A stretch of 64,000 bases of DNA from the sequence record KY555144.1; one strand, 5' to 3'. The stretch's first letter is position 1; each line of letters starts with the position of its first letter. Shown piece by piece: positions 1,031 through 62,461 of this stretch. The notes under the pieces are model-generated. The model saw only the letters and a list, made by a program, of their open reading frames with translations, was not told where the DNA came from and did not search any database. Position numbers and translations under genes: made by a program.

Positions 1031-1069
1031 TCCTGACATTTGCCTTGAAACGCCGGGGCCTGTCAACGC
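1031..1069 (-). promoter_or_regulatory. sigma70-like promoter, probably leaderless, for DUF1643
   Basis: GCG-TTGACA (1066-1061), weak -10 (CAAATG), then ATG-ACG-ACA-GC, which contains the family leader motif GACGACAGC. Confidence 0.5.
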
Positions 1070-1077
1070 TTGAAATC

Positions 1078-1107
1078 AAAAGGGCCGCCCCAGCGGGACG
1101 GCCCTTT
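1078..1107 (-). terminator. intrinsic terminator
   Basis: Minus strand AAAGGGCCGTCCCGCTGGGGCGGCCCTTTT: GC stem followed by a U tract. Confidence 0.8.
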
Positions 1108-1296
1108 CTCGATCTTGTCGAACTTCGCCGATCCGAAACCGGGGCTTCCCGGCGACCGCCTCGGAGTTCGACCTTGTAGCGCCTCTAACGCTTGCCCCGC
1201 GTCGCGGCTTGGGAGCACCGAGCCTTGACGCTGATCTAGTGGGCGGCAGGTGATCGCGGCGGTCATTGCCTCCTTCAAGGGCGAGGCCCTCTCATG
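1078..1296 (-). ncRNA. candidate structured ncRNA (~215 nt)
   Basis: Bounded by a TTGACG-17-TAAGCT promoter and an intrinsic terminator; several helices can be drawn (GACCGCC/GGCGGUC, GCCGGG-AAGC-CCCGGU, AGCGU/GCGCU); no credible ORF ends before the terminator. Confidence 0.45.
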
Positions 1297-1332
1297 CCCG
1301 CGCAGCTTAGGCGGCGGCGCGGATCACGTCAA
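1296..1332 (-). promoter_or_regulatory. sigma70-like promoter upstream of the candidate ncRNA
   Basis: TTGACG (1332-1327), 17 nt, TAAGCT (1309-1304). Confidence 0.6.
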
Positions 1333-1712
1333 TCCCCCGGATAGCTGGCGCAGACCTCGCGCAGGATAGAGCGCAGCGGCTCGCCCGGCACCGCCAGGGG
1401 CTTGAGCTTGCGGCTCTCGTCCCAGGCCATGGCGTTGGCGTGCAGAAGCCAGAGCACGAAGGCGCGCAGGTCCTTGACCCCGTCGGGCAGCGGGATGCCG
1501 CGCGCGGTGGGGACGTGGAAGACCCGCCCATCATCCGTGTACGCGAGAACCTCGTCGAGCACCGTGGCCCGCTTCTTAGCTTCGGCGAGGACAGCGACAC
1601 CCTTCTGGAACTCACTGACCTGGATGAGCGCCCGGCGCTCCTTAGGGAAGTGGGTCTTGGTCCACCAGGAGGGCTTGCTGTTTGAGGACACGGTTACGCT
1701 CCAGGAGGGCAC
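1329..1712 (-). CDS. hypothetical protein (start uncertain)
   Basis: 127-aa ORF co-directional with the operon; its TGA lies inside the next -35 box. Confidence 0.6.
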   Translation of the reverse strand: MPSWSVTVSSNSKPSWWTKTHFPKERRALIQVSEFQKGVAVLAEAKKRATVLDEVLAYTDDGRVFHVPTARGIPLPDGVKDLRAFVLWLLHANAMAWDESRKLKPLAVPGEPLRSILREVCASYPGD

Positions 1713-1905
1713 GCAGCGAGGGGATGTCGCCGTCCGCCATCTGGTAGAGGCGGACGAACTCGTCGTAGTCGTACTCGTTGATGAGGTCCCGCATCGCCTG
1801 CGGGAGCTTGTCGATGGTCTTGAAGAGCCGGCGCCTATAGCGCTGGGCCTCCATGCGCCGGCGGATGGCGGCGTGGCGCGTCTTGGCCGCCCGAACGCGC
1901 CGCAT
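1642..1905 (-). CDS. hypothetical basic protein
   Basis: MRRVRAAKTRH...; ATG overlaps the upstream stop. Confidence 0.7.
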   Translation of the reverse strand: MRRVRAAKTRHAAIRRRMEAQRYRRRLFKTIDKLPQAMRDLINEYDYDEFVRLYQMADGDIPSLRALLERNRVLKQQALLVDQDPLP

Positions 1906-3684: not shown

Positions 3685-4109
3685 TGGCAGACGTCCTTGG
3701 CGTCGCGCGCGGTCACGGGCGACATGTAGGTGTCGGGGTCCCAGGCGCCGGGCGTGCTGCCGCCATAGATATAATCGCCCGGCGCGGGCGGCGTCATCGA
3801 CCCGCCGTTGCTGGCGACCTTGCCCGGATTGGCGTAGGCCGAGAGCCACAGACGCCCGTCGCTGCCCCGCAAGACGAATTGGCCGTTCTGGCGGCAGACG
3901 CGGGCGATGGTCATGCGCCATGCGTAGTTGAGCTTGGCCTTCTTGGCGGCCTCGTCCCGCAACCACTGTTCATGCCCCAGGCGCGCCCAGCGCGCCTTCT
4001 TGGCCACGAGGTCCTTGTGCTCCTGCGACCAGAGAGGGTGGTTGTACTCGTCGCACGCCGAAAGGCTGATCCCGGCGATGACAAGCAGGAGGAGAGCGCC
4101 GCGCCGCAT
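3681..4109 (-). CDS. putative lipoprotein
   Basis: MRRGALLLLVIAGISLSA-C: basic N-terminus, hydrophobic stretch, lipobox LSAC. Confidence 0.72.
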   Translation of the reverse strand: MRRGALLLLVIAGISLSACDEYNHPLWSQEHKDLVAKKARWARLGHEQWLRDEAAKKAKLNYAWRMTIARVCRQNGQFVLRGSDGRLWLSAYANPGKVASNGGSMTPPAPGDYIYGGSTPGAWDPDTYMSPVTARDAKDVCQ

Positions 4110-5539
4110 CAGGCGATCTCGTAGCCGGCCGCGACCCGTTCGCGGATTTGGTCCAGGGTCGCCGGCTCCAGCACCTTGCCGGTGTTGAAGACCTCGTCCA
4201 GCAGGTCGTGCTCGACCACATCGCCCTCGTGGACCGTGATGGTCTCGAAGCGGCCGTCCTCGGTCGTCACCAGGGCCAGCTTGCCCTTCTTGGAGACCTT
4301 GCCCGGATCGGTGATCGGGTCCTTGTAGATTTCGACCCACTCGCCGTTGATCTCCTGGGCCGAGGACTTCATCGCCCACTTGTTGGTGTCGCGGTCCAGG
4401 TCGCCCGTCGCCAGACCGCCGCCGGCGGCCGTGATGATGCTGTCGGGCGCGACGCCGATGTTGCGGGCCAGGATGAACGGGTCCATGTGGGTGTTCTCGT
4501 TCATGCCGTCGCCCTGGAGGACCTTGGCACCCAGGTTCAGCACGTCCAGGCCGTGGCTGTTCTTCTGGGTCCCGAAACCGGCGGCCAGGGTCTGGACGAC
4601 CGGCGGGATGACCTTGAAGAGGTCGCCCGAATCCGGGCGGCAGACCGGGGTCAGGTTCTTGTTGGCGATCAGTTCCTTGCGCTCGGTCAGCTTGCCGGCG
4701 AAGCGGAAGATGTCCCAGGTGTCACCGACCAGCGAGACGATCGAGCCGGGAGGCGCCTTGTTCAGGCAGTGGTCGATATAGTCATCGTCGTTGTCGCGCC
4801 CGAACGCGCACGAGATCGAGTGCTCCGAGGCCAGGACCGAATAGCCCGACATCTCGCTGAAGTAGTTGATATTCGCCGCCCGCACGGCGGGGACGTTGTC
4901 CGAGCCCTGGAAGTGGAAGAGGTGGGCGATGCCGGCCAGGACCGAGTGATCATAGCCCATGGTCCCGCGCGAGGAGAAGTCGAGGAAGGCGAACGGCGAC
5001 ATCGGGGTGTCGCTGTTGGCTTCCCAGAAGCTCTTGATCCGCGTGGCGATGCCGTTGACGCGCGCGGCGATCGTCGAGGCCGTCCAGACGTCGCGCAGGA
5101 TCATGGTCTCGAAGTAGGAGGTCAGCCAGGGCAGGCGCGGGTCGAGGTTCTCGACCGAGATCAGCGCGTTGCGGATCGGGATCATCACGCCCTCGGGCGC
5201 GGCCTTGATCCGCAGCGGGAGATAGCCGCCGTACTCGTTCAGGATGATCTCCCAGCCGTCGCGGTTGAACGGCAGGCCGTGGGCCGGCACGAACGCGGCC
5301 ATCTCCTCGACGTTGGCGCGGGTGACCGGCTTGCCGAGCTTCTGGAAGAGCAGGCGCTGGAACGCCGCCAGCATCACCTTGGGATAGCGCCCGCCCCGGC
5401 TCTCGATGTAGCTGTAGACGGTGGTGCAGCCGTCGCGATAGAGCACCCAGTGCCCCAGCTTGTAGCTGTCGGTGTCGGCGATCAGATTGTAGGTCTCGAC
5501 GGGCGGCGTGCCGTCCCAGTTGGCGAGGTCAAAGGCCAT
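4109..5539 (-). CDS. nadV: nicotinamide phosphoribosyltransferase (NAMPT)
   Basis: DSYK..H, YSYIESRGG, DFSSRG, ASEHS, RPDSGD, QGDG, RDT..WAMK, KDPITDPGKVSKKG motifs. Confidence 0.95.
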   Translation of the reverse strand: MAFDLANWDGTPPVETYNLIADTDSYKLGHWVLYRDGCTTVYSYIESRGGRYPKVMLAAFQRLLFQKLGKPVTRANVEEMAAFVPAHGLPFNRDGWEIILNEYGGYLPLRIKAAPEGVMIPIRNALISVENLDPRLPWLTSYFETMILRDVWTASTIAARVNGIATRIKSFWEANSDTPMSPFAFLDFSSRGTMGYDHSVLAGIAHLFHFQGSDNVPAVRAANINYFSEMSGYSVLASEHSISCAFGRDNDDDYIDHCLNKAPPGSIVSLVGDTWDIFRFAGKLTERKELIANKNLTPVCRPDSGDLFKVIPPVVQTLAAGFGTQKNSHGLDVLNLGAKVLQGDGMNENTHMDPFILARNIGVAPDSIITAAGGGLATGDLDRDTNKWAMKSSAQEINGEWVEIYKDPITDPGKVSKKGKLALVTTEDGRFETITVHEGDVVEHDLLDEVFNTGKVLEPATLDQIRERVAAGYEIA

Positions 5540-5553
5540 GATGAGGTCCCCCT

Positions 5554-6795
5554 TTAAGCGTTGAGGCTGAGCATGCGGTCCACGATGAAGGCGTGGTCCT
5601 CGAAGGTGTCGCCGGGGTCGATCTCCGAGATCGGGTCCCAGTCGGCGGCGGCGGCGTCGTCATGGCCCTGCACGTGCGGCAGACCCAGGCCCAGAGGCGG
5701 GGGCGGCAGGACGAAGTGATAGGCCGTGGAGATGATGTGGGCGCGCCGCGAGCGGTGCGGGTCGTCGAACACCTGCGGATCGCCGATCTGATAGCGGCGC
5801 AGCAGGTGCATCGCCTTCAGCACGCAGTCGGGCGCCGGCGGGGCGGCGGACTTGGTCTTCTCGGCCGCCTTGCTCGCTTTCAGCCACGCGCGGTACTCCG
5901 GAAGGTGGGCGGGCGGGAGGAACAGCGCCGTCTCCTCGATCACCTCGCGCAGGCAGTTGTCCATCAGCGAGCGACCGGCGTTGACGAAGCCGCCCGGCAG
6001 GGCCTTCATCCCAAAGCCCTCGGGGCCGCCGCGCCGGATGCGCAGGATGTGACCGGCGCACTCGACGACCGCGTCCACCGCCAGGAAGGGGCCAGCGCCC
6101 CAGCGTTCGCGATAGGCGTCCTCGGCCTTCTTCTGCGACATCAGATAGGCGTATTCCGGGCGGTCCCGGAACCGCTCCAGGAAATCGATCGTGCTCGGGT
6201 AGAGGAGATCGGTCCAGGCGTAGCCGTTGTCGCTCCACGAGGTGTCGCGGAAGTTGACGGCGCCGGCGAAATAGGCCTTGCGCAGGGCGGTGGCGTTGAC
6301 CCCGTTGTCCTCGACCGGGGTGTAGGGCCATTGCGGGAACCACGTCAGATACTCGCTGGTGGCGTCGCGGATGTTGCCGATCAGGGTGACGCGCGGACGC
6401 AGGACCTTGGAGGCGTTCTTGACGTGCTGCTGGACCTGGGCGATCCACTCGTTCTTCCCGTAGGGGCCGGTGTCATTGAGCGCGATCACCTCGGTGCGGC
6501 TCAGGAGATCAAGCACGAGGGCGGCGTGATCGCCCACTCGGCTCTCGACGGTCTCGGCCTCGCGGCCGGCGTCGGCCTCTTCCTGGGCCAGATCGCTGAG
6601 CCCGTTCAGGATCATCTCCTGGCGCTCGCGGAAGGTGAAGGGGTTGCGGGTGTCGCGGGCGAGATTGGCCGAACCGACGAACCACAGGACCTTGCGGGCC
6701 TTGCGGCGCGCGGCCTGGAAGAGGCGGAAGTGACCCATCTTGGTCACCAACTGTCCCCGCGTGATCAGCACCGCGATGTCGTATTCGAAGTCCAC
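5554..6795 (-). CDS. nadM: bifunctional NMN adenylyltransferase / Nudix hydrolase (NadM-Nudix-like)
   Basis: N-terminal nucleotidyltransferase (VGSAN, RNPFTFRER, ATALRKAYF) plus Nudix box (LPGGF...REVIEET) and FEDH end; adjacent to NAMPT. Confidence 0.9.
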   Translation of the reverse strand: MDFEYDIAVLITRGQLVTKMGHFRLFQAARRKARKVLWFVGSANLARDTRNPFTFRERQEMILNGLSDLAQEEADAGREAETVESRVGDHAALVLDLLSRTEVIALNDTGPYGKNEWIAQVQQHVKNASKVLRPRVTLIGNIRDATSEYLTWFPQWPYTPVEDNGVNATALRKAYFAGAVNFRDTSWSDNGYAWTDLLYPSTIDFLERFRDRPEYAYLMSQKKAEDAYRERWGAGPFLAVDAVVECAGHILRIRRGGPEGFGMKALPGGFVNAGRSLMDNCLREVIEETALFLPPAHLPEYRAWLKASKAAEKTKSAAPPAPDCVLKAMHLLRRYQIGDPQVFDDPHRSRRAHIISTAYHFVLPPPPLGLGLPHVQGHDDAAAADWDPISEIDPGDTFEDHAFIVDRMLSLNA

Positions 6796-7223
6796 TATCG
6801 CTTACCCCTCATTCTGAAGCCGGGCCGGATGCGCCGGATCGGCTTGTTCTCGTCCAGGGAGCGACCCCCATAGCCGCTCAACTCGCTGAAACCGTTCATG
6901 CGCACCGCGAACCGGCGCGTCTTGACGGTCAACTGGTCGCGCTCGAAACCGCGCTCGACCAGCGTCAGGTCGACGACGTCGCCGAACACCTCCCCGTGGA
7001 AGATGCGCCGCCGCGCCCAGGCGATCGCCGCCCCGAGGTGCGGAAATTCCCGGCGCCGCTCGGCATCCCGGATCGAGACGCCGTCGGCATAGCTGGCGTC
7101 GACCCAGTCCAGTTTGACCTCGCGGCGCGGCGCGGTCACCTTCTTGAACTCGATCGGCGGCGACGGTTGGCCCAGGCCACCCGTCTCGATGTCAAAAACC
7201 GTGTAGGTGATTGTCTCCGTCAT
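6795..7223 (-). CDS. hypothetical protein, probably leaderless
   Basis: ATG 8 nt after a -10 box; stop overlaps the nadM start. Confidence 0.75.
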   Translation of the reverse strand: MTETITYTVFDIETGGLGQPSPPIEFKKVTAPRREVKLDWVDASYADGVSIRDAERRREFPHLGAAIAWARRRIFHGEVFGDVVDLTLVERGFERDQLTVKTRRFAVRMNGFSELSGYGGRSLDENKPIRRIRPGFRMRGKR

Positions 7224-7264
7224 GCCTCGCGACACTACGCTTTGGGTTCTTGTATTGTCAACAC
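7224..7264 (-). promoter_or_regulatory. family promoter, leaderless type (drives the NAD operon)
   Basis: GTG-TTGACA (7261-7256), 18 nt, TAGTGT, 8 nt, ATG. Confidence 0.7.
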
Positions 7265-7265
7265 A

Positions 7266-7739
7266 TCACTTCAGGAGCTTGAGGGCCGGGGCGTGATATT
7301 TGAACCCCGCCTCGCTGATCGGCCCCACGCCCACGAAGGTGATGGTCGGCTTGCCGAACACCGTGCGGCCCGCGTCGAGGACGAGGGTCGCGCCGGCATG
7401 GTCGCGGAACCGCTCATAGAGGGCTTCCAACTCGGCGCTGGTCCCGGTGTGGAGCGCGATCTTCACGGCCGACTGCGAGTAGCGGTATTGCCGCGCGATC
7501 CTGGGGAACCGCTCCATGGCGTCCCACCACGCATGGAGGTAGGCGTGGCCGGCCTGAGCCGCGAGCTTGCCCAGGTTTAGGGATTTCTCGTCCGGCTTGC
7601 GGCGGTTCTTGGCCACGGTCATCGCGTCGAGCGCTTCCTGGCTCACGACGGCGTAGAGGCGCAATTCGGCCTTAGGCTTGCCGGCGAAGACCGCCAGCAG
7701 CGAGTCCCAGGCATTGCGCCAAGCGTCGATCACGTTCAT
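7266..7739 (-). CDS. peptidyl-tRNA hydrolase, PTH2 family
   Basis: GKLAAQAGHA, KIAL, LVLDAGRTVF, T.VGVGP motifs. Confidence 0.85.
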   Translation of the reverse strand: MNVIDAWRNAWDSLLAVFAGKPKAELRLYAVVSQEALDAMTVAKNRRKPDEKSLNLGKLAAQAGHAYLHAWWDAMERFPRIARQYRYSQSAVKIALHTGTSAELEALYERFRDHAGATLVLDAGRTVFGKPTITFVGVGPISEAGFKYHAPALKLLK

Positions 7740-8604: not shown

Positions 8605-9203
8605 GCGGTCTCCTGCTGGAGGTTAGCCGGCGCCGGGATGGCGTCGGAAAGGGCTTGCTCGACCAGGACCAGGATGTCCATGACGAGCTTGGGATTGAGG
8701 TCGGGCTCGGTGAGCGCGGCGGCCAGGGCGTTGATCCGGAACCACGTCGGGTCGGCGTGCGGGATCAGATTGAGATTGTGCAGGTGCAGCAGCGTCGAGC
8801 CGTGGGAGGCGGTCCGCTCCGAAAGCTCGCGCAGCACGCGGGCGCCGGCGAGTTGGTCGGCCAGGACCTTGATCACGCTGCCCGAGGGAGCCAGGAGCAG
8901 GCGCATCCAGTCGCCGTTCGGATCGTCGGCTTGGCGCAGGTCCGGATGGTCCAGCGTCTTGCCCCAGATCACCTCATGCGCCTTGGCGGCCAGCGAACGG
9001 CGGCGGCGGGCGAGGTCTTCGGCGTCCTTGGCGGCGCGCAGGCTGGAAAGCGTCGTGGCGATCAACACCGAGGGAAAGAGCGCGACGACGAAGAACGCGG
9101 CGCGCTCAAGCGGCGAGGCGTGCGAAGCCACGATATTCATGGCCGTGCCGATCAGCACCGTCGGATAGATCAAGCCGCCGTGGCGCTGGATGAACGAGAT
9201 CAT
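8601..9203 (-). CDS. hypothetical protein with two N-terminal hydrophobic segments
   Basis: First gene after the 9204-9277 promoter cassette; SD GGAGG. Confidence 0.78.
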   Translation of the reverse strand: MISFIQRHGGLIYPTVLIGTAMNIVASHASPLERAAFFVVALFPSVLIATTLSSLRAAKDAEDLARRRRSLAAKAHEVIWGKTLDHPDLRQADDPNGDWMRLLLAPSGSVIKVLADQLAGARVLRELSERTASHGSTLLHLHNLNLIPHADPTWFRINALAAALTEPDLNPKLVMDILVLVEQALSDAIPAPANLQQETA

Positions 9204-9277
9204 GAAAAGGGCCTCCGGCGTTGTCGTCGAAGGCCCTTCTAGCGAGTCGGTGTCAGGCTGTCAACACATGTCAGCCA
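9204..9277 (-). promoter_or_regulatory. family promoter cassette with SD-occluding hairpin
   Basis: TGGCT-N5-GTG-TTGACA-17-TAGAAG-GGCCTTC-GACGACAAC-GCC-GGAGGCCCTTTT-CATG. Confidence 0.88.
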
Positions 9278-9280
9278 AGA

Positions 9281-9892
9281 TCAGGCGGCGTTCGTCACCA
9301 GGGTTTCCAGGCGATCAAAGCCCAGGTCGAGGCGGCCCCACATCGACGAGGGCGTATGCGGCTTGACCACCTCGGTGAACCGCGCGCGCTCCTTCAGATA
9401 CATGCGGGCCATGGGGATGTTCGGCTGGCCGGTCGCCGGGTCCTTGATCGAGGCCTCGACATTGGCGATCCGGTCGGCGAGCTTGAGGATGCAGGCCTTG
9501 GGGTGCTCGCCCAGCTTGCGATAGATGTCCTCGTTGCGGGCCTTGCGGTTGGGGCCGATGCCCGAGACCGCCCAGACTAGCGCCGCGACGTCCTCGCCGA
9601 ACTTTTCCTTGAGCATCTCCAGCCGCTGCTCGGGCGTCATGTCGAGATGGGTGTCCTCGATCACGTCGTGCAGCTTGGCGGCGGCCGTCCAGGTAAAGCC
9701 CAGGAAGCCGTAGTCATCGAGGATGCGCTCGACCTTCTGGAGATGGTAGAGATAGGGCTGGCCGGCGTACTGCTGGTCCCCGTGAGCGGCGATGGCGAAC
9801 TCCGTCGGGTCTTCCTGGCGCAGCGGCGCGCCCGGCGCCGTCGGGAGGCCGGTCAGGATGGAGGCGAGTTGGTCGAGCGAGGCGTCAGACAT
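9281..9892 (-). CDS. HD-domain hydrolase, small alarmone hydrolase/Mesh1-like
   Basis: AH..Q...G.PY..H, LHDVIEDT, FG..VA.LV, LKLADRIAN motifs; no synthetase domain. Confidence 0.85.
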   Translation of the reverse strand: MSDASLDQLASILTGLPTAPGAPLRQEDPTEFAIAAHGDQQYAGQPYLYHLQKVERILDDYGFLGFTWTAAAKLHDVIEDTHLDMTPEQRLEMLKEKFGEDVAALVWAVSGIGPNRKARNEDIYRKLGEHPKACILKLADRIANVEASIKDPATGQPNIPMARMYLKERARFTEVVKPHTPSSMWGRLDLGFDRLETLVTNAA

Positions 9893-12375: not shown

Positions 12376-13608
12376 CTAGCCCTTCACGCAGAGGACTTGC
12401 TTGAGGGTGTGGACGATGTCCACGAGGTCCTTCTGGGCCTCCATGACCGCGTCGATGTCCTTGTAGGCCATCGGGATTTCGTCGATCACGCCAGCGTCCT
12501 TGCGGCACTCCACGCCCTCGGTGGCCTTGATCTGGTCCTCCAGGGTGAAGGTCGCCTTGGCCTGGGTCCGCGACATCGTCCGGCCCGCGCCGTGCGAGCA
12601 CGAGCAGAACGAGTCCGCATTGCCCTTGCCGCGCACGATGTAGGACTTGGCCCCCATCGAGCCGGGGATGATCCCGAACTGGTCCTTCTGCGCCGACACC
12701 GCGCCCTTGCGGGTCACGAAGACCCACTCGTCGAAGTGGAACTCCTTCTGGACGTAGTTGTGGTGGCAGTTCACCGCTTCCTTGTCCGTCTTGAACGGCG
12801 GCAGGCCCGACGCCCGCATGGCCTCCAGGACCCGGACCATCATCATCTCGCGGTTGATCCGCGCGAAGTCCTGGCCCCAGGCGACGGCTTCCACGTAGTC
12901 GTGGAACTCCGGCTCGCCTTCGCAGAGCCAAGCAAGGTCCTTGTCCAGCGGCTTGCGCCCGTCACGGCGCAGCATCATCTCCTTGGCCTTCTCGATGAAG
13001 ATGCGGCCGATGGTGTTGCCGACGCCGCGCGAGCCCGAGTGGAGCATCACCCAGACGCGCTGATCCTCGTCGAGGCAGACCTCGATGAAGTGGTTGCCGC
13101 CGCCCAGGGTGCCCAGTTGGACCACGCTGTTGGCGTTCTTCAGCGCCGGGTACTTCTCGCAGAGCTTGTCGAACCGCGCCTCCAGGCCCGAATCGACCCA
13201 CTTGCGCAGGATCGAGTTGGGGATGCCGCTGCGCCCGTTCCAGCCGCCCGACGGACCCGGCCCGCCGTGCGGGACGGCGTGCTCGATCAGCGAGCGAAGC
13301 TTGGACAGGCTGTCGGGGAGGTCCGACGCGGTCAGGCTGGTGCGGACCGCCATCATGCCGCAGCCGATGTCGACGCCGACGGCGGCCGGGATGATCGCGC
13401 CCTTGGTCGGGATCACCGAGCCCACGGTCGAGCCGATGCCCATGTGGACATCCGGCATCAGGGCGACATGCGAGTGAATGAAGGGCAGGGCCGCGAGGTT
13501 GTGGGCCTGGACCTGAGCCGGTTGCTCGAAGTTCACGCCGCGAACCCAGGCCTTGATCACGCCGCCATTCCAGCCGTTGATCTCTTCGTAATGGGTCTCG
13601 GCGGACAC
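12376..13608 (-). CDS. rtcB: RtcB RNA ligase
   Basis: MPDVH.G.G..VG, GVDIGCGM, QLGTLGGGNHFIE, HSGSRG, HHNY, RKGA, PGSMG, SCSHGAGR, DE.P.AYKDI. Confidence 0.97.
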   Translation of the reverse strand: MSAETHYEEINGWNGGVIKAWVRGVNFEQPAQVQAHNLAALPFIHSHVALMPDVHMGIGSTVGSVIPTKGAIIPAAVGVDIGCGMMAVRTSLTASDLPDSLSKLRSLIEHAVPHGGPGPSGGWNGRSGIPNSILRKWVDSGLEARFDKLCEKYPALKNANSVVQLGTLGGGNHFIEVCLDEDQRVWVMLHSGSRGVGNTIGRIFIEKAKEMMLRRDGRKPLDKDLAWLCEGEPEFHDYVEAVAWGQDFARINREMMMVRVLEAMRASGLPPFKTDKEAVNCHHNYVQKEFHFDEWVFVTRKGAVSAQKDQFGIIPGSMGAKSYIVRGKGNADSFCSCSHGAGRTMSRTQAKATFTLEDQIKATEGVECRKDAGVIDEIPMAYKDIDAVMEAQKDLVDIVHTLKQVLCVKG

Positions 13609-13674
13609 GGCGGGCTCCTTCTGTGGTGTCGTGATTTACGACTTTTGACCATGCTCCTCGGACGGTGTCAACAC
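13609..13674 (-). promoter_or_regulatory. family promoter cassette (rtcB)
   Basis: GTG-TTGACA (13671-13666), 18 nt, CAAAAG, then ACGACAC and GAAGGAG SD. Confidence 0.65.
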
Positions 13675-13851
13675 TTCTTCAACGGCGGTGATCTGAATTT
13701 GCAGCAGACTGGCCGCCGGGTGGCTGGGCGGAAGAAGGGCCTCGGCCTGTTTCATGGCGTCCAGGGTGTCTTCCAGCGCGGCGCGGAAGGTGTTGCGCTG
13801 CTCGGTGGTGGCGCGGACGGCGGAGGGAAATTCGAAGATCATGGGGATCAC
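13636..13851 (-). CDS. hypothetical protein
   Basis: Fills the gap between a terminator and the rtcB promoter and reads through that promoter; no clear SD. Confidence 0.45.
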   Translation of the reverse strand: MIPMIFEFPSAVRATTEQRNTFRAALEDTLDAMKQAEALLPPSHPAASLLQIQITAVEEVLTPSEEHGQKS

Positions 13852-13867
13852 CTTGAAGGGGTACGCT

Positions 13868-13906
13868 AAAACGAAAAACGCCGGCGAGGATGGCTCGCCG
13901 GCGTTT
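13868..13906 (-). terminator. intrinsic terminator after the SPFH gene
   Basis: 13-bp stem AAACGCCGGCGAG/CTCGCCGGCGTTT followed by TTCGTTTT on the minus strand. Confidence 0.88.
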
Positions 13907-13937
13907 CCTAGTCCAGGGCGGGGCTAGAGCCGCCGCC

Positions 13938-15848: not shown

Positions 15849-16135
15849 CAGGTCGCGAGCCCGCGCTGCTTCAAGGCGACGATCTGCTCGATCTCCTTGA
15901 GGATGTGGTCCGACAGGCGGTCGGTCCGTTCCTTGATGCCGGCCGGGACGCCGATCTTGCACTGACCGATCTCGTGCAGGCGGTCGGAGACGGCCTTCAG
16001 GTCGATCAGGGTGTCGCTGATCAGCACCTCGGCGAGGCCCACGGCCTCGGTCTGGATGGCGGCGATCCGCTGGGCGGTGGTCTGCGCCGATTGGCCAGCG
16101 ACGAGGGCCAGGGCGGCGGTGTTCTTCTGGGTCAT
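15848..16135 (-). CDS. hypothetical helical protein
   Basis: First gene after a promoter cassette; SD AAGGAG. Confidence 0.85.
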   Translation of the reverse strand: MTQKNTAALALVAGQSAQTTAQRIAAIQTEAVGLAEVLISDTLIDLKAVSDRLHEIGQCKIGVPAGIKERTDRLSDHILKEIEQIVALKQRGLAT

Positions 16136-16196
16136 GGGGTCTCCTTCGTTGTCGTCGGGCGTGACTTCTAGTTGGGTTCCTGGAGGCTGTCAACAC
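16136..16196 (-). promoter_or_regulatory. family promoter cassette
   Basis: GTG-TTGACA (16193-16188), 17 nt, TAGAAG, 8 nt, GACGACAAC-GAAGGAG. Confidence 0.88.
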
Positions 16197-16458
16197 TTTC
16201 GCTCACCGGCGCGGCGCCGTAGTGCGCGACCAGGACAAGCCGGGCGCCGCAGGCGACCAGCGCGCCGCGCGCGTCGTAGATCAGCCGCCCGGCCTCCTCG
16301 CCGTTCTTGTCCAGGATGATGGCCTCCCTGACGTAGGTCGGCTTGCCGCTCTTGCCCCGCTGGATGCGGATCGGGGGATCATCCGTGCCGCGCTTGGTGT
16401 TGCGATCGATGACCTGTCGGTTGATGTTGAGGACGCAGGTCGTGCGGGTGATCTTCAT
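16168..16458 (-). CDS. conserved phage hypothetical protein
   Basis: NINRQVI..N.K.G..DPPI...ACGARL motif; its stop is the TAG of the downstream -10 box. Confidence 0.8.
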   Translation of the reverse strand: MKITRTTCVLNINRQVIDRNTKRGTDDPPIRIQRGKSGKPTYVREAIILDKNGEEAGRLIYDARGALVACGARLVLVAHYGAAPVSESVDSLQEPN

Positions 16459-18181: not shown

Positions 18182-18252
18182 GATCGGCTCCTCTCGCTGT
18201 CGTGAGGGAGCTTGTACGGGCTCACGCCGATGCTGTCAACACTCTAACGCCA
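18182..18252 (-). promoter_or_regulatory. family promoter cassette with SD-occluding hairpin
   Basis: TGGCG-N5-GTG-TTGACA-17-TACAAG; GCTCCCTC-ACGACAGC-GAG-A-GGAGC. Confidence 0.85.
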
Positions 18253-18263
18253 ACAAAGAATCG

Positions 18264-21121: not shown

Positions 21122-21480
21122 TGGTCCGACACCTTCGCCAGTTGCTTTTCCAGTTCGGCGCGCAGTTCAGCGTCGCTCAGGCCCAGGCGCGCCTTCATGA
21201 AGGCTACCGCCTCGGCGGCGGTCTCGAAGGAGCGGGTCTCGGCATCGGTGCTGTCGCGCAGGCCGAGGATTTCGATCACGCCCCAGAAAGTCGCCCAGGC
21301 GGAGGCGATCAAGGCCGCCACCGTGATGGCGAAGCCGAAGTTGAACTGGCGCGCGGCGCTCAGTTCCACCGCCTCGGCCGCCGTCCAGGCTACCGCGACC
21401 ATGCTCACCGAGGCGAGATGGAGCAGGGCGGCTCTGCGGGTGTGGGTCGGGCGGACTTCCAGGGTCATCTTGTCTTGCAC
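21118..21480 (-). CDS. membrane protein
   Basis: GTG after cassette SD GAGGAG; two hydrophobic segments. Confidence 0.75.
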   Translation of the reverse strand: MQDKMTLEVRPTHTRRAALLHLASVSMVAVAWTAAEAVELSAARQFNFGFAITVAALIASAWATFWGVIEILGLRDSTDAETRSFETAAEAVAFMKARLGLSDAELRAELEKQLAKVSDQ

Positions 21481-22685: not shown

Positions 22686-22694
22686 GCTATGCGC

Positions 22695-44532: not shown

Positions 44533-44540
44533 GTCTTTCC

Positions 44541-44611
44541 TGGCGTGAAAGTGTTGACAGCCTGAAGGGACTCCTCTACACCCACGCTCGACGACAACGA
44601 GAGGAGTTCCC
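44541..44611 (+). promoter_or_regulatory. family promoter cassette
   Basis: TGGCG-N5-GTG-TTGACA-17-TACACC-7-GACGACAAC-GAGAGGAG. Confidence 0.85.
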
Positions 44612-48107: not shown

Positions 48108-48337
48108 TCGAGCATGTCTATCGTCGCGATCCGCGCGGGCGCGATTACGGGCTCCAATGCCTGGACCTCGACGAGGCGCTGAAGATCGTCGCGGCCGAGA
48201 AGCAGGACTTCCTTCTGCGCTTGGTCGCGGTCCTGCACGAGAACAACCTTCTGCGCGACGCCGACGTCATGGAACTGCTCGGCAGGGGCTGGGCGCTTGA
48301 ACCCTATGATCTCCACTACAGCGACGCCGACGATTAG
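48104..48337 (+). CDS. hypothetical protein
   Basis: Coupled 77-aa ORF. Confidence 0.72.
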   Translation: MIEHVYRRDPRGRDYGLQCLDLDEALKIVAAEKQDFLLRLVAVLHENNLLRDADVMELLGRGWALEPYDLHYSDADD

Positions 48338-48338
48338 G

Positions 48339-48397
48339 CGTTGACAACACTCTCGCGCCAACATAGAAGGGTCCTCGACGACAACGAGGAGGCTTCG
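48339..48397 (+). promoter_or_regulatory. family promoter cassette (near-identical subfamily)
   Basis: TTGACAACACTCTCGCGCCAACATAGAAGGGTCCTC-GACGACAAC-GAGGAGGCTTCG-ATG. Confidence 0.9.
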
Positions 48398-48781
48398 ATG
48401 AAGCTCGCGACCCAAGACCGCACCGACCCGCGCCTGAACGCGCGCTACCGTCTCGCCAAGGCGGTGTTCTACTATGGCGGCCCGCACGAGTACCCGATCC
48501 ACCTGAACGACTGGTGGAACGAGGTGACGCCGGCCGACGTCGAGGACCGCATCTCCGAACTCTGCCGCGAACTGTCCAAGCTGTCGGGCCAGACCCTGGC
48601 GCCGGCGACCTTCTACGAACGGATGAAGCTGGGCTTCGTCGACCTCCCGGAAGTGAAGGACGAGGACTTCGCCGCCCTGTCGGAGACGACCCGCAACAAC
48701 CTGCTCGCCATGCAGGACCGCTTCTCGGTCCACGGGAGCGGCTTCATGCTCTACTGGAACATCGTCAAAGAGGAGGCCTGA
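48398..48781 (+). CDS. hypothetical protein
   Basis: First gene after a cassette. Confidence 0.82.
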   Translation: MKLATQDRTDPRLNARYRLAKAVFYYGGPHEYPIHLNDWWNEVTPADVEDRISELCRELSKLSGQTLAPATFYERMKLGFVDLPEVKDEDFAALSETTRNNLLAMQDRFSVHGSGFMLYWNIVKEEA

Positions 48782-49840: not shown

Positions 49841-49843
49841 TCC

Positions 49844-49911
49844 TGGCGTTCTTGTGTTGACAAGGCCGGCGGCGCTGGCCTAGAACGTCGTGGACGACAA
49901 CAGGAGGGACC
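49844..49911 (+). promoter_or_regulatory. family promoter cassette
   Basis: TGGCG-N5-GTG-TTGACA-18-TAGAAC-6-GACGACAAC-AGGGAGG. Confidence 0.87.
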
Positions 49912-50268
49912 ATGCCGCTCTACGACTTTCCGACCGGACCGACCACGATGGAGGACATCGAGGCGTTCGTCGCCGGCGCCCAGGCGGTGGTGACCGCCCA
50001 ACTGGCCAAGGCCTTTCCCGGCGTGTCCGCGCCGGTCCTGGAGATCGCGCCGGTTCACCCGAGCAGCCAGTTCGCCAAGATCGTCGCGGTCGACGCCAGT
50101 CAGCGCTCGGCCTGGGCGTTCGTCCGGCTGGAGAACGGTCTGATCTACAAGCCCTCGTCGTGGAAGGTGCCGGCCAAGCATGCGCGCGGCACGATCCACA
50201 CCGCCGCGCACGGCGCCGAGTACGTCGACTGGACCGGCCCGCGCTACGTCAAGGACCTGCGTCGATGA
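49912..50268 (+). CDS. conserved phage hypothetical protein
   Basis: S..AFV...G.IYKP.SWK.PAKHARG.I motif. Confidence 0.85.
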   Translation: MPLYDFPTGPTTMEDIEAFVAGAQAVVTAQLAKAFPGVSAPVLEIAPVHPSSQFAKIVAVDASQRSAWAFVRLENGLIYKPSSWKVPAKHARGTIHTAAHGAEYVDWTGPRYVKDLRR

Positions 50269-57179: not shown

Positions 57180-57186
57180 ATTTTGT

Positions 57187-57256
57187 TGGCGCGAGAACGT
57201 TGACAGCCTCGGCGTGGTGTCATAAAAGCCTCCTCGACGACAACGAGGAGGCCCCC
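57187..57256 (+). promoter_or_regulatory. family promoter cassette with perfect SD-occluding hairpin
   Basis: TGGCG-N5-ACG-TTGACA-17-TAAAAG; GCCTCCTC-GACGACAAC-GAGGAGGC. Confidence 0.9.
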
Positions 57257-57676
57257 ATGGCTTACGCAATTCCGGACCTGAGCACCTACACGTTCCACGA
57301 CCCCAAGGTCGAACGGTTCGCCAAGGCGATGATCTCGACGATCGAGACCGCCCAGACCATGCTCACGGCCTTCGCCAACGATCTCGCCGACAATCCTCTT
57401 CAGGCGTTCGAGCATAGCTACGGCGCCAAGATGGCCGCCGCCCACAGGGACGTCGCCAAGGGGCTGCTCAACGAGGTTCTCGACGCGCTGCTGCATGGTC
57501 AGGACAAGACCTGGGCCTACATCGGCCAGGACCTGCGCGAGCGGCTGATGTATCGCGTGATCTACGCGGCCTCGAACCCGCCGCGCTCGACCAACGCCGA
57601 GAGCAACGACATGGCCCGCTTCGTCCTGCGCGCCGAGGCCGACATGCTCGACCGCATGACCAAGAGCCGCTTCTGA
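57257..57676 (+). CDS. hypothetical helical protein
   Basis: First gene after a cassette. Confidence 0.85.
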   Translation: MAYAIPDLSTYTFHDPKVERFAKAMISTIETAQTMLTAFANDLADNPLQAFEHSYGAKMAAAHRDVAKGLLNEVLDALLHGQDKTWAYIGQDLRERLMYRVIYAASNPPRSTNAESNDMARFVLRAEADMLDRMTKSRF

Positions 57677-58370: not shown

Positions 58371-58588
58371 CGTCGCAGACCCAGAGAACCCTCATCCTGT
58401 CCGGCGTGGGCTTCTTCATCGGCTTCATGCTGGTGTTTGGCTTCATGAGCGTCTCGCAGGCCTCCTACAACCAAGGCTATCGAGACGCCAAGACCGACAC
58501 GCGTCGGGACGAGCCGGCGTGCTTTACCTCCCAGCGCTGCTACCTGGGCCAGGACGCCAACGGGCGGTGGTTCATCGAGCCGAAATAG
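58367..58588 (+). CDS. small membrane-anchored protein
   Basis: SD GAGGAGG; TM segment then YNQGYRDA. Confidence 0.75.
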   Translation: MTSQTQRTLILSGVGFFIGFMLVFGFMSVSQASYNQGYRDAKTDTRRDEPACFTSQRCYLGQDANGRWFIEPK

Positions 58589-58589
58589 T

Positions 58590-58657
58590 TGGCGTTTAAG
58601 TGTTGCCAAAGCCGAGGCACTCGGCTAGAACACGCCCGACGACAACGAGGAGGCCCC
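58590..58657 (+). promoter_or_regulatory. family promoter cassette (variant -35)
   Basis: TGGCG-N5-GTG-TTGCCA-17-TAGAAC-6-GACGACAAC-GAGGAGG. Confidence 0.85.
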
Positions 58658-58864
58658 ATGCCACACTTGAGCCAGCAGCCCTTCACCTTCGACTTCACCA
58701 GCGACGCCCTGCGCGCGGCGCTCGAAATCGAAAAGGGCGCCACCGAATCCTACCGCTACGAGACGATCTTCGTCTTCAACACCGAGCGCGAGATCATCGG
58801 GACCCAGGTCCGCGTCATGGACGAGGAGGGCTTTTTCGAGGCCTACGTGGCGGGGGAAGCCTGA
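58658..58864 (+). CDS. small acidic hypothetical protein
   Basis: First gene after a cassette. Confidence 0.8.
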   Translation: MPHLSQQPFTFDFTSDALRAALEIEKGATESYRYETIFVFNTEREIIGTQVRVMDEEGFFEAYVAGEA

Positions 58865-59785: not shown

Positions 59786-59801
59786 TCGTCGCCAGCCCGG
59801 C

Positions 59802-59860
59802 TGGCTTCAGTGTGTTGACGGCGCGTCGATCGCCCGCTAAGAAGGGCTGACGGTCACGCT
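59802..59860 (+). promoter_or_regulatory. family promoter, divergent leader
   Basis: TGGCT-N5-GTG-TTGACG-17-TAAGAA; leader ACGGTCAC; preceded by a GCCAGC-CCG-GCTGGC hairpin. Confidence 0.78.
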
Positions 59861-59901
59861 CTGGCTGCATGAATTTTCAATCCGAAAGGGGCCTTAAGTC
59901 C

Positions 59902-61932
59902 ATGGATTTCCACGTCTTTAAGACGGCCGTCGCCAAGCAGTGGGCCGCGATGACCAAGGATGACGCGACCCTGTTCCGCGTCGACGTCGACAAGGACCTC
60001 CTGTGGTCGACCTATCTGGGGGCGTTCCCGGCCGGAACCGACCCGATCTTCCGCGAGCGCTCCGAGCACGACTGCTCGTGCTGCCGCAACTTCATCCGCA
60101 ACGCCGGCGACGCCGTGGCGGTGGTGAACGGTCAGATCGTGACGATCTGGGATGGCAAGATCGAGGGCGAGCCGGCCTACCAGCAGGTCGCCGCCACCCT
60201 GGCGGCCCTGGTCCGCTCGCGCCCGGTGCGCGACATCTTCCTGCACGACCAGAAGACCATCGGGACCGACAAGAACGTCGAGACCATGCTGGGCGGCGAC
60301 GTCACCTGGAACCACTTCTTCGTCAATGTCCCCTCGCGCTTCGTCAAGAAGGGCAAGGACATCCCGACCGCGCTCCACATCCCGCGCACCGCGCAGGAGA
60401 CGCTCCTGCGCGCCGTGACCGAGATCACCGACGAGGCGATCGACACGGTGCTGGACCTGATCGCCCAGAACGCGCTCTATCGCGGGGCCGAACACAAGTC
60501 GGCGGTGGTGGCGTTCCAGAAGGCCAAGAAGACCTTCGAGGGCCTGTCGGCCGCCGACAAGGCGCTGAAGGCCTGGGTCAACGTCACCAATGGGGAAATC
60601 TGGGGCTCGGTCTCGGGCATCCGGAGCACGGTGATCGGCTCGCTGCTGGTCGACCTGTCGGCTGACGTCGACCTGGAGGACGCGGTCAAGAAGTTCGAGG
60701 CCAAGGTCGCGCCGCACAACTACAAGCGCACGACCGCCCTGGTGACCAAGAAGCAGATCGAAAACGCCAAGAAGACGATCTCCGACCTCGGCCTGACCTC
60801 GGCCCTGGAACGGCGCTACGCCGTCCTCAAGGACGTGTCGATCAACGACGTGCTGTTCGCCGACCGCGACGCCAAGTCGGTGATGAACGACGTCTTCGAC
60901 GATCTGGCCGCCGACGTCGCCGAGAAGACCAAGTCCTACGACAAGATCGAGGAGGTCTCGATCGACAAGTTCCTGTCCGACATTCTCCCGAGGGTGTCGA
61001 GCGTCGAGGCCCTGGTCGAGAACCGCCTGACGAGCAATTTCGTCAGCCTGATCGCGCCGGTCGATCCGACCGCCGGCTCCCTCTTCAAGTGGGGGAACAA
61101 CTTCTCCTGGTCCTATGCCGGGGAGGTGGCAGACTCGATCAAGGCCCGCGTCAAGGCGGCCGGCGGCAACGTCACCGGCGATCTCTGCTGCCGTCTGGCG
61201 TGGTTCAACTATGACGACCTCGACTTCCACATGAAGGAACCGGGCGGCAACCTGATCTACTTCCGCCAGAAGTCCTCGCCCTACACGGGCGGGCGCCTCG
61301 ACGTCGACATGAACGCCGGTGGGGGCCATACCCGCGAGCCGGTCGAGAACATCTTCTACGGCGACCGCCGGACGATGAAGGAAGGCGTCTACGAACTGAT
61401 GGTCCATCAGTACAGCAAGCGCGAGTCCAGCAACGTCGGCTTCGAGGTGGAGATCGACTACCTGGGCTCGGTCACCCGCTACGCCTACACCACGGCCCTG
61501 CGCCAGGAGCAGGTCGTCAAGGTGGCGCAGTTCAAGTACAGCCACGCGCGCGGCATCGAGTTCATCTCCTCGCTCCCGGCCTCGTCGGCGAGCAAGGACG
61601 TCTGGGGCGTGAAGACCGAGACCTTCCGCAGGGTCAACGTCATCATGCTCTCGCCCAACCACTGGGAAGGCGAGCCGGGCGTGGGGAACAAGCACTGGTT
61701 CTTCATGCTGGACGGAGGCGTCAACGAGGACGGCGCCCGTGGCTTCTACAACGAGTTCCTGAAGGATAGCCTCACGCCCCACCGTCGCGTCTTCGAGATG
61801 CTGGGGTCCAAGCTGAAGCCCGCGCCGGCGACTGAACAACTCTCCGGCCTGGGCTTCTCCTCGACCAAGCGCGACGAACTCGTCGTGCGCGTCAAGGGGG
61901 CCTTCACGCGTACCCTCAAGATCAAATTCTAA
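59902..61932 (+). CDS. large conserved phage protein (EHDCSCC N-terminus; C-terminal DUF2135/YfaP-like domain)
   Basis: HDCSCCRNFI; W...DDLD.H..EP.G..IY...GG.LDVD.N...PVENI; start moved to ATG 59902 after SD AAAGGGG. Confidence 0.8.
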   Translation: MDFHVFKTAVAKQWAAMTKDDATLFRVDVDKDLLWSTYLGAFPAGTDPIFRERSEHDCSCCRNFIRNAGDAVAVVNGQIVTIWDGKIEGEPAYQQVAATLAALVRSRPVRDIFLHDQKTIGTDKNVETMLGGDVTWNHFFVNVPSRFVKKGKDIPTALHIPRTAQETLLRAVTEITDEAIDTVLDLIAQNALYRGAEHKSAVVAFQKAKKTFEGLSAADKALKAWVNVTNGEIWGSVSGIRSTVIGSLLVDLSADVDLEDAVKKFEAKVAPHNYKRTTALVTKKQIENAKKTISDLGLTSALERRYAVLKDVSINDVLFADRDAKSVMNDVFDDLAADVAEKTKSYDKIEEVSIDKFLSDILPRVSSVEALVENRLTSNFVSLIAPVDPTAGSLFKWGNNFSWSYAGEVADSIKARVKAAGGNVTGDLCCRLAWFNYDDLDFHMKEPGGNLIYFRQKSSPYTGGRLDVDMNAGGGHTREPVENIFYGDRRTMKEGVYELMVHQYSKRESSNVGFEVEIDYLGSVTRYAYTTALRQEQVVKVAQFKYSHARGIEFISSLPASSASKDVWGVKTETFRRVNVIMLSPNHWEGEPGVGNKHWFFMLDGGVNEDGARGFYNEFLKDSLTPHRRVFEMLGSKLKPAPATEQLSGLGFSSTKRDELVVRVKGAFTRTLKIKF

Positions 61933-61951
61933 CGGAAGGACCTGAAAGACC

Positions 61952-62374
61952 ATGAGCACCGACCTCTTCGAGATCGCCGCGCGCGAGAAGTTCCGCTTCG
62001 AAAGCCCCAAGGGCCTCCTGGGCGTGGAAGAACTGTTCGACCTGCCGCTGACCAGCACCGTCGCCGGCAAGGCCAACCTGAACGATATCGCCGTCGACCT
62101 GTTCAAGCAGATCAAGGACCTCGACAACATCTCGTTCGTCACGCCCAAGAAGGTCGACCCCTCGATCGGCCAACGCCTGGACATCGTCAAGCGGGTGATC
62201 GAGATCAAGCAGGCCGAGAACGCGGCCAAGCTGAAGACCGCCCAGGACAAGGAGACCCTGCGCATCCTGGACGAGGCGATCGCCGCCAAGAAGTCCGAGA
62301 AGATCGCCGGCACCTCGCTGGAAGACCTCGAAGCCCAGCGCGCGGCCTTGCTCTCGGGCGGCGCCTCCGCCTAA
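61952..62374 (+). CDS. conserved phage hypothetical coiled-coil protein
   Basis: LFE.A.R.KFRF.S.KG.L.VE.LFDLPL...L.D.A; SD AAGGA. Confidence 0.85.
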   Translation: MSTDLFEIAAREKFRFESPKGLLGVEELFDLPLTSTVAGKANLNDIAVDLFKQIKDLDNISFVTPKKVDPSIGQRLDIVKRVIEIKQAENAAKLKTAQDKETLRILDEAIAAKKSEKIAGTSLEDLEAQRAALLSGGASA

Positions 62375-62400
62375 GCCTTCGGGCGGGCTGACATAGGCGC

Positions 62401-62461
62401 TTGACAACACTCTCGCGCCAACATAGAAGGGCCTCCGACGACAACGCCGGAGGCCCTTTTC
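62401..62461 (+). promoter_or_regulatory. family promoter cassette (near-identical subfamily; hairpin + U4)
   Basis: TTGACAACACTCTCGCGCCAACATAG-AAGGGCCTCC-GACGACAACGCC-GGAGGCCCTT-TTCATG. Confidence 0.9.

Follow-up and report, generated by a model that had tools for sequence, protein, structure and literature searches.

Repeated multi-part cassettes in the early arms of Caulobacter phage Ccr5 as candidate early-promoter and leader units for host RNA polymerase

Why would a phage repeat one elaborate, multi-part sequence ahead of so many of its small genes, and what is expected to read it? This question is raised by a 64,000-nucleotide (nt) stretch of DNA, termed the window below, which corresponds with 100% identity to positions 124001-188000 of Caulobacter phage Ccr5 (KY555144.1), a phiCbK-type giant siphovirus (Dolichocephalovirinae, Shapirovirus). 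The window carries 134 annotated genes, mainly small and of unknown function, arranged in two divergent arms that occupy the minus strand up to about 39.2 kb and the plus strand from there on. Recognizable products include NAD-salvage enzymes, RtcB, a (p)ppGpp enzyme, an antirestriction protein, a GcrA-like protein, and the XRE regulator TgrL. An earlier note on this DNA had listed 22 dispersed promoter cassettes and proposed that they form a regulon with an additional layer of control. Each cassette is named here for the window coordinate of its -35 element (first base on the plus strand, lowest base on the minus strand).

We hold with moderate confidence that the cassettes constitute a family of extended early-promoter and leader units read by host RNA polymerase (RNAP), and that they are a GC-rich analogue of the promoter-early stem-loop (PeSL) cassettes and of T4 and T5 early promoters. 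In this model, host RNAP with the housekeeping factor sigma73 (RpoD) would read the cassettes directly after DNA entry. Each cassette would act as a unit of fixed geometry, with an upstream block at about -49 to -36, a consensus -35, a 17-bp spacer, and a host-type extended -10, (GC)TAGAAG. Transcription would begin at the G or A of GACGACAAC and produce an unstructured, U-free leader of about 20-25 nt that is followed by a strong Shine-Dalgarno (SD) sequence and the start codon. On both early arms, about 25 cassettes would each stand at the head of a unit of 2-17 small genes, one unit after the next. The +1 block may serve as an initial transcribed sequence through which RNAP can efficiently escape a near-consensus promoter, and the upstream block may be a contact or operator element beside the -35. 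In about one third of the cassettes, incoming transcripts are predicted to fold a terminator-like hairpin that hides the SD. The cassette's own transcript would begin in the loop and stay open, which would insulate each unit.

Architecture and promoter core

All 22 of the -35 coordinates given in the earlier note proved exact, each marking the first or lowest base of a TTGACA, TTGACG, or TTGCCA hexamer, and all 22 cassettes face the same way as the gene downstream. The parts follow one another in the order yTGGCK-N5-GTG, TTGACA, and N17(18), and then (GC)TAGAAG, 7-9 nt, (G)ACGACAAC, SD, and start codon. Spacers are 17 nt long in 17 cassettes and 18 nt long in 5, and in 19 of the 22 cassettes 7-9 nt separate the -10 hexamer from ACGAC. 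The leader, counted from G+1 to the start codon, measures 19-25 nt in most cassettes.

Dinucleotide shuffles of the window supplied the expected counts for each of these patterns. The core TTGACR-N16-19-TARAAG occurs nine times in the window (expected 0.00), and TGGCK-N5-RYGTTGMC occurs 14 times (expected 0.02), in strict register relative to the -35. Similarly, ACGACAAC is found 16 times against an expectation of 1.16, and 14 of these 16 copies lie inside cassettes. The composite GTGTTGACA-N30-34-GACGACAAC was observed seven times (expected 0).

The earlier note described a uniform architecture in almost every intergenic gap, a description that holds in part. An exact upstream TGGCK is present in 14 of the 22 cassettes. 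Five others (1061, 7256, 13666, 16188, and 29727) have a degenerate yTGAnn at the usual place, and three (25381, 48341, and 62401) have no upstream block 5' of the -35 and carry its reverse complement within the spacer. Cassettes with the block 5' of the -35 are called class A, and those with the same block inverted within the -35/-10 spacer are called class B. The +1 block is degenerate in cassettes 7256 and 59815. Of the 28 annotated gaps that measure 25 nt or more, 20 contain a cassette; cassettes 26510 and 41420 lie within the annotated 3' ends of preceding genes. Some of the other gaps have a plain promoter-like site, such as TTGACG-N17-TAAGCT at 1279-1328 (minus strand), which lacks the extra blocks; the rest hold a strong terminator or what is probably coding sequence missing from the annotation. 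Cassette-headed units comprise 2-17 genes and span 1.1-7.3 kb each.

It had also been stated that TTGACA-17-TA represents a sigma70 promoter. The core does match the consensus of the host RpoD, but the loose form of the motif is insufficient for this assignment and the host consensus is needed. Host RpoD (sigma73) promoters have a -35 of TTGaCgS and a -10 of GCtANAWC separated by N10-14 (Malakooti et al. 1995, as cited in PMC8144410). The cassette -35 fits this consensus, reading TTGACA in 19 of 22 cases, TTGACG in two, and TTGCCA in one, usually followed by G/A-C. The -10 fits as well, with a cassette consensus of (g)cTAgAag, and is weak in a few examples (1061 and 13666). Like the RpoD promoters of C. 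crescentus, the cassettes pair TTGACA(G/A)C with GCTAGAAG and leave 14 nt between the 7-mer and the 8-mer. Unlike them, the cassettes mostly have G at the final position of the -10, where the host consensus has C, and the published consensus includes neither a block at -49 to -36 nor one at +1 to +9. Because the cassette -10 ends in G, a scan for E. coli-type promoters that required T at the last -10 position detected none of the cassettes.

A sigma54 reading of the TGGC sequence was rejected. Promoters of the sigma54 type read TGGCAC-N5-TTGCW, with GG and GC located exactly 10 bp apart at -24/-12 and with no -35/-10. In the cassettes, the position 13 nt past the T of TGGC holds the TT of TTGACA and not GC, and a full -35 and -10 at sigma70 spacing further contradict this reading.

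The +1 position was predicted from cassette geometry to be the G or A of GACGACAAC. Evidence regarding the time of expression comes from tgrL, which is an early gene in phiCbK infection and peaks by 15 min (PMC10688885). The Ccr5 ortholog of tgrL sits in the unit headed by cassette 35564.

Conservation and known counterparts

The whole Ccr5 genome was scanned piecewise with a position-weight matrix. Full cassettes, numbering about 25, are present only at 114-193 kb, which bears out their confinement to the early-type arms. The terminal repeats and the structural, lysis, and replication modules contain none. Partial cassettes, which have the upstream block and core and no +1 block, precede the rIIA operon, follow the tRNA cluster, and occupy a few further sites.

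The same cassette set is carried by phiCbK. CcrRogue, which belongs to a different genus, has about 28 cassettes and shows the same architecture at 21 sites orthologous to those of Ccr5. Over these 21 sites, the two phages agree at 42% of flank positions and at 74% of upstream-block positions (0.86-0.90 at TGGC); identity reaches 99% for the -35, 60% for the spacer with class-B pairs included, and 80% for the -10. Because the blocks are conserved while flanks and spacers diverge, this comparison indicates that the upstream and +1 blocks are under purifying selection between phage genera. The Brevundimonas phage Bajun likewise has this architecture, in the form of TTGKC-N8-TTGACA and CGACGACAAC.

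A search for the composite GTGTTGACA-N30-34-GACGACAAC across 185,579 bacterial and archaeal species, each represented by a single genome, yielded 34 scattered single matches in 596 Gb, and none of these was in a Caulobacter or Brevundimonas genome of that set. In IMG/VR, the exact composite is found in known phiCbK-type genomes and in one unrelated AT-rich family with a single, chance-like shared site. Taken as a composite, the cassette is therefore specific to the phage lineage and is not a copied host promoter class, and host mimicry of the whole cassette was dismissed. The earlier claim that two extra blocks exist, at about -49 to -36 and +1 to +9, is thus well founded, given that they are kept between phage genera and that the composite is absent from Caulobacter and Brevundimonas.

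Another phage of the same host provides a useful comparison. Colossus lacks TGGC..GTG and has GTTTCTT-TACAAG and TGACGATCA instead. Because its blocks differ on the same host, the Ccr5-type blocks cannot be a requirement of the host polymerase. These sequences belong to an early-type promoter family of its own (JX100810, 206510-246545), which consists of TTGACR, GTTTCTT-TACAAG, and TGACGATCA and includes a subclass in which GAGAG immediately adjoins TTGACAGACGGC. The GACGA core at the predicted start is the sole part common to Ccr5, Colossus, and Kikimora.

The CtrA sites of phiCbK-like phages are located in the terminal repeats (PMC9437464), and the CtrA box TTAA-N7-TTAA, with up to one mismatch allowed, has no match anywhere in the window. 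At least two classes of promoter are therefore present in the phage.

The closest counterparts are the PeSL cassettes of the T4-type phages RB49 and phi1 (Arbiol et al. 2010, PMC2839356). Like the Ccr5 cassettes, PeSLs are dozens of dispersed intergenic units of about 70-100 bp that are oriented with the genes, and they combine a strong sigma70-type early promoter with a conserved element 5' of the -35 and a stem-loop. They are similarly concentrated in regions rich in small genes of unknown function, and one PeSL subclass corresponds to the start-in-hairpin logic. Crossovers occur inside PeSLs, to which the single swap junction within a Ccr5 cassette is a possible parallel. However, the upstream element of the Ccr5 cassettes is the GC-rich TGGCK-N5-GTG and not an AT-rich tract, and their stem joins the discriminator to the SD and is strong in about one third of cases, whereas the PeSL stem is GGGG..CCCC. 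The near-invariant +1 to +9 block and the occurrence of the upstream block in two orientations also distinguish Ccr5, as does its identity as a siphovirus of an alphaproteobacterial host. Moreover, termination at the Ccr5 hairpins is predicted only from folding, and the +1 to +9 block has not been described for PeSLs.

In the early promoters of T4 and T5, such as N25, conservation reaches past the -35 on its 5' side and also covers the initial transcribed region, and these promoters need no extra regulator. Like the Ccr5 cassettes, they are numerous, nearly identical, and strong, they serve unmodified host RNAP, and their conservation is extended, with the initial transcribed region setting productive escape. 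They differ in that their upstream part is A/T-rich (UP-like) and their sequences are unrelated to those of the cassettes. A third parallel is offered by the T4 genes e, soc, 49, and I-TevI, where longer transcripts fold an SD-hiding helix around an internal promoter (PMC3014915). The internal promoters of T4 are late and their purpose is temporal, whereas the Ccr5 design repeats at successive early promoters, and its insulating role is predicted from folding only.

No account of these cassettes in phiCbK-like phages, and no start-site mapping or promoter motif for these phages, was found in the searchable literature, outside of which lie subscription-journal papers on the Ccr phages. The phiCbK genome paper does not describe promoters, and phiCbK-type records annotate terminators only. 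New here are the inverted upstream block, the promoter-in-hairpin design, the differing blocks of Colossus, and the misfit of the TgrL motif.

Although phiCbK and its relatives are standard tools for Caulobacter research, their records carry no promoter annotation. Approximately 25 predicted early promoters, with their start sites and short leaders, provide an operon map for more than 130 early genes, most of which have no known function, and the map corrects several start codons. The cassettes also offer strong, compact, and sequence-defined promoter and ribosome-binding-site parts for a GC-rich alphaproteobacterium. They make the switch from early to middle expression directly testable through mutation of two short blocks, and the orientation-flipped -35 element and the promoter-in-hairpin design merit work at the bench. 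More broadly, the PeSL idea of a promoter and hairpin that form a unit boundary is extended from enterobacterial T4-like myoviruses to giant siphoviruses of alphaproteobacteria.

Start-site hairpins and the two extra blocks

Between the -10 and the start lie 6-9 nt that are often complementary to the SD region. Examples are GGGCCTCCG..CGGAGGCCC in class-B cassette 62401 (62385-62464, plus strand; with a TTTT run, -25.8 kcal/mol, z -6.6), the 9-bp GCCTCCTCG..CGAGGAGGC in class-A cassette 57200 (57184-57259, plus; -17.5 kcal/mol, z -6.0), and GCTCCCTC..GAGAGGAGC in cassette 18234 (18179-18255, minus; -13.3 kcal/mol), a full class-A member with the +1 block ACGACAGC. Over 48 cassettes of Ccr5, Rogue, and Bajun, the segment from the discriminator to the ATG folds with a mean of -8.8 kcal/mol. 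The corresponding value is -7.8 +/- 0.33 when 3' parts are swapped among cassettes, with 0 of 300 swaps folding as well, and it weakens to -5.7 on shuffling of the 5' arm; the leader from +1 alone gives -1.9 kcal/mol. A fold of -9 kcal/mol or stronger is present in 15 of the 48, and individual cassette hairpins range from -13 to -26 kcal/mol, with z of -3.6 to -6.6. Because the predicted start lies in the loop, the helix would be formed only by read-through RNA.

Two of these structures resemble terminators and lie between the -10 and the start codon, at 9201-9244 (minus) and 62424-62467 (plus). The former belongs to cassette 9259 (9201-9280, minus), a full class-A member whose discriminator-SD hairpin adjoins a TTTT run. 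Hairpins of the 9259 and 62401 types finish in TTTT and have been annotated in relatives as rho-independent terminators (Karma NC_019410, 134036-134063, 9259 type; phiCbK NC_019405, 183509-183536, 62401 type). The T run pairs with the A-rich end of the -10 (AGAAG). Hairpins within the -35/-10 spacer were considered as a general feature and discarded, with a mean z of -0.15 and a few Ccr5-specific cases.

Several observations weigh against the proposal that these are promoter and leader units for host RNAP. A strong hairpin is present in only about one third of the cassettes and a T run in only two, and the window shows no enrichment of canonical terminator-like sites. The +1 is a prediction from its distance to the -10. 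The replication genes of phiCbK are likewise early and yet have no cassette. Furthermore, the upstream block is GC-rich and resembles no described UP element, Colossus uses other flanking blocks on the same host, and three cassettes carry an inverted spacer block with about 91% conservation, which is hard to explain by RNAP contact alone.

These last points raise the possibility of an additional regulator at the DNA level, which is the strongest of the alternatives. It supposes that the 21-bp quasi-palindromic TTGGC-N11-GACAA is the operator of a phage (or host) DNA-binding protein that switches all early units at once, in the simplest case as a repressor that ends early transcription, or otherwise as an activator of the class-II type. 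Such a protein is compatible with host-RNAP promoters and would add the control layer proposed in the earlier note. That proposal stands with respect to the two blocks. The blocks alone do not establish a control layer, because strong phage early promoters that work without an extra regulator, among them those of T4 and T5 and the PeSLs (PMC2839356), share extended conservation. A regulator that acts on the blocks is nevertheless a plausible hypothesis, toward which the conserved inverted block in three cassettes and the different Colossus blocks on the same host both point. We regard its existence as a tentative possibility, somewhat short of an even chance.

Most of what favors an operator comes from the class-B cassettes (25381, 48341, 62401, one more in Ccr5, and their orthologs), which read TTGACAACACTCTCGCGCCAACATAGAAG. 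Their spacer matches the reverse-complemented class-A block TGGCGCGAGAGTGTTG in 20 of 21 positions, and the inversion pivots on the near-palindromic -35 GTTGACAAC, so that the block can occupy either orientation around it. Class-B spacers of Ccr5 and Rogue are about 91% identical (62 of 68 positions, counted by eye), compared with about 60% over all 21 pairs. Bajun has one promoter with both arms, GGCGCGAGAGTG-TTGACAAG-CACTCTCGCC. Seen as a single unit, the element spans 21 bp with the -35 inside one arm. In addition, the block keeps a strict register to the -35 and tracks phage lineage and not host, being present in a Brevundimonas phage and absent from the C. crescentus phage Colossus, and the early arms encode many helix-turn-helix (HTH) proteins. 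The inverted block thus favors a site for a sequence-specific protein over simple polymerase contact, although its geometry would be unusual.

Within the window, cassette 25381 (25327-25402, minus) carries the spacer block TTGACAACACTCTCACGCCAGCATAGAAG and a hairpin of -20.5 kcal/mol before the antirestriction gene, and cassette 48341 (48325-48400, plus) also has its block inverted within the spacer. A leftward promoter in the divergent region that was absent from the earlier list (39191-39219, minus; TTGTCA-N17-TAGGGT) has the class-B-like spacer ACACTCGAACGC, which resembles the inverted block, and no +1 block. It drives gp225c-gp221c, including the GcrA-like gene, in a unit that ends at the terminator at 35596-35621.

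Other evidence speaks against a regulator of this type. The arms are 16 bp apart from center to center, which is unusual for an HTH dimer, and most cassettes have one good arm only. There are no CtrA boxes in the window, and the sigma54 spacing is wrong. From the group of TgrL and the XRE proteins RtrA, RtrB, CdxA, and CdxB, phage TgrL and host CdxA were rejected as operator-binding candidates: their matrices, which derive from chromatin immunoprecipitation sequencing and were taken from the S2 Table of PMC10688885, gave 11 (TgrL) and 17 (CdxA) matches near cassettes at a threshold of at least 7 bits, which is about the number expected by chance and with no constant position. A MotA-like activator fared no better. 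Kikimora annotates a "motA-like middle transcription regulatory protein" syntenic with Ccr5 gp143 (24869-25459 and 30714-31313, respectively, of the compared stretches), and Pfam finds no domain in gp143. The adjacent gp144 has an HTH_3 domain.

A more ambitious version of this idea seems unlikely to us, though it deserves mention. In it, the 21-bp element in either orientation, perhaps along with the invariant +1 block, would serve a single phage factor as its common operator for switching some 25 early units off or on at once, with the promoters also nested in hairpins that block read-through. This factor would be conserved in phiCbK-type and Brevundimonas Dolichocephalovirinae. If true, a genome-wide switch would be laid over host-type promoters.

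An RNA-level role for the +1 block is an improbable alternative. It proposes that the invariant 5'-terminal (G)ACGACAAC of early mRNAs is recognized on RNA by a translational repressor or by an endoribonuclease that retires early messages (as with T4 RegA/RegB), or that it functions as a translational enhancer or standby site or as a determinant of 5'-end chemistry. The block makes up the whole leader from +1 to the SD at constant distance, is conserved across genera, and lies in an unstructured leader, and T4 is known to retire early mRNAs via an 11-nt motif around GGAG (PMC3014915). However, the block is kept even where it is coding and without an SD. Cassettes 1061 and 7256 show this case, with start codon and +1 block fused (aATGACGACAGC and cATGACGGAG, respectively). 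The first (1028-1082, minus) is degenerate, with TTGATT upstream and a weak -10, and its mRNA looks leaderless; the second (7221-7277, minus), which reads CTGAAG..GTG TTGACA..TAGTGT..cATGACGGAGACAAT, is also degenerate and probably leaderless. Colossus and Kikimora have just the GACGA core of the block in common with Ccr5, an indication that it functions at the start site. Also, the analysis turned up no candidate RNA-binding protein, and Rfam gives no family match, by which known RNA families in the leaders were dismissed.

Because the block is retained where it is coding and its GACGA core recurs in Colossus and Kikimora, the evidence points to a role for it at the level of DNA or initiation and away from one in ribosome binding. 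The initial transcribed sequence helps to determine promoter output and escape, a YG step near +6 slows escape, and the T5 N25 promoter is limited by escape (PMC5961368, PMC12464699). In the cassettes, GACGACAAC contains no U, and it has no YG at +5 to +9 (ACAAC).

It is very doubtful that the cassettes are mainly recombination linkers, whose similarity would be kept by recombination or gene conversion while they serve as PeSL-type crossover points for the shuffling of gene modules. Comparison of Ccr5 with phiCbK and Karma revealed 11 distinct insertion/deletion or replacement events in the window. One is a promoter swap before the antirestriction gene, which has a class-B cassette in Ccr5 and a class-A cassette in phiCbK and Karma, with the junction (25351/25371) inside the cassette. 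Two gene insertions specific to Ccr5 start exactly after a cassette ATG (58657 and 62464): gp271, an extra gene relative to phiCbK, follows cassette 58603, and 302 extra bp follow the ATG of cassette 62401. Class-B copies are also nearly identical within and between genomes. The other eight events are away from cassettes, and because cassettes occupy 22 of the 133 gene junctions, a link in 3 of 11 events is not clearly above expectation and is suggestive only. These junction statistics are too weak to make shuffling the main explanation, and the conservation of blocks across divergent spacers is a mark of selection on the blocks and not of homogenization.

Individual cassettes and module boundaries

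The remaining minus-strand cassettes vary in how closely they conform to the consensus. Cassette 13666 (13606-13687) has a degenerate upstream TTGAAG, a spacer of 18 nt, and the +1 block ACGACACC. Cassette 16188 (16133-16209) contains GTG-TTGACA, CTAGAAG, and CGACGACAAC, and the TAG of its -10 is the stop codon of the preceding gene. Full class-A members are 21535 (21478-21556), which has an extra hairpin within its spacer, 23485 (23433-23506), and 31239 (31184-31260), which has the top matrix score. Class-A cassette 26510 (26457-26531) lies within the annotated 3' end of gp200c, with TTGACG and the +1 block ACGACACC, and cassette 29727 (29672-29748) has a degenerate upstream CTGACG, an 18-nt spacer, and TGACGACAAC. 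Class-A cassette 35564 (35507-35585) heads a 10-gene unit that includes the tgrL ortholog (gp218c). Its +1 block is shifted (ACGACAGA, 13 nt past the -10), and the strong terminator at 35596-35621 is immediately upstream.

On the plus strand, the full class-A cassette 39246 (39230-39307) heads the first rightward unit and has a second GAGTGTTGACAAG copy 30 nt upstream. Class-A cassette 41420 (41404-41481), within the annotated 3' end of gp233, has the "perfect" block TGGCGCGAGAGTGTTGACAAC and the +1 block ACGACAGC. Cassette 44554 (44538-44614) is full class A with a -10 of TACACC. Class A also includes 49857 (49841-49914), which has an 18-nt spacer and heads the longest unit (17 genes), and 58603 (58587-58660), whose -35 is TTGCCA. 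Cassette 59815 (59799-59904) pairs a class-A upstream half, TGGCT..GTG TTGACG..TAAGAA, with the degenerate +1 block TGACGGTCAC and a 53-nt leader.

Cassette positions bear on several gene starts. The annotated GTG start of gp158c at 7235 lies in a -10 and is probably wrong; an ATG at 7223-7221 is in frame. For gp277, the probable start is the in-frame ATG at 62462-62464, 39 codons before the annotated one. The SD and ATG of cassette 23485 (23435-23433) differ from the annotated gp191c start (23396), and this ATG opens a reading frame other than that of gp191c.

Units driven by cassettes encode NadV-like and NadM/Nudix proteins of NAD salvage, a (p)ppGpp synthetase/hydrolase-like protein, and RtcB (4109-6795, 9281-9892, and 12376-13608, all minus). 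These are functions of the host-takeover or counter-defense type, which the early promoters would express. A 3.6-kb segment at 20568-24160, present in Ccr5 and Karma and missing from phiCbK, includes two cassettes, all of gp187c-gp193c, and parts of gp186c and gp194c, and both of its junctions are inside genes.

Canonical intrinsic terminators were rejected as general module boundaries since they are not enriched, and convincing examples are limited to 35596-35621 and the gap at 13843-13937 (minus). The latter holds a strong terminator, GCCGGCGAG-CCATC-CTCGCCGGC followed by TTTTTCGTTTT, that was overlooked by a simple scan. Outside the window, a class-B cassette at Ccr5 189001-189097 (phiCbK 185967; Rogue 192573) has a 57-nt leader with a conserved 9-bp hairpin, GTCCGAAAT..ATTTCGGAC, which could be a regulatory leader or a small RNA.

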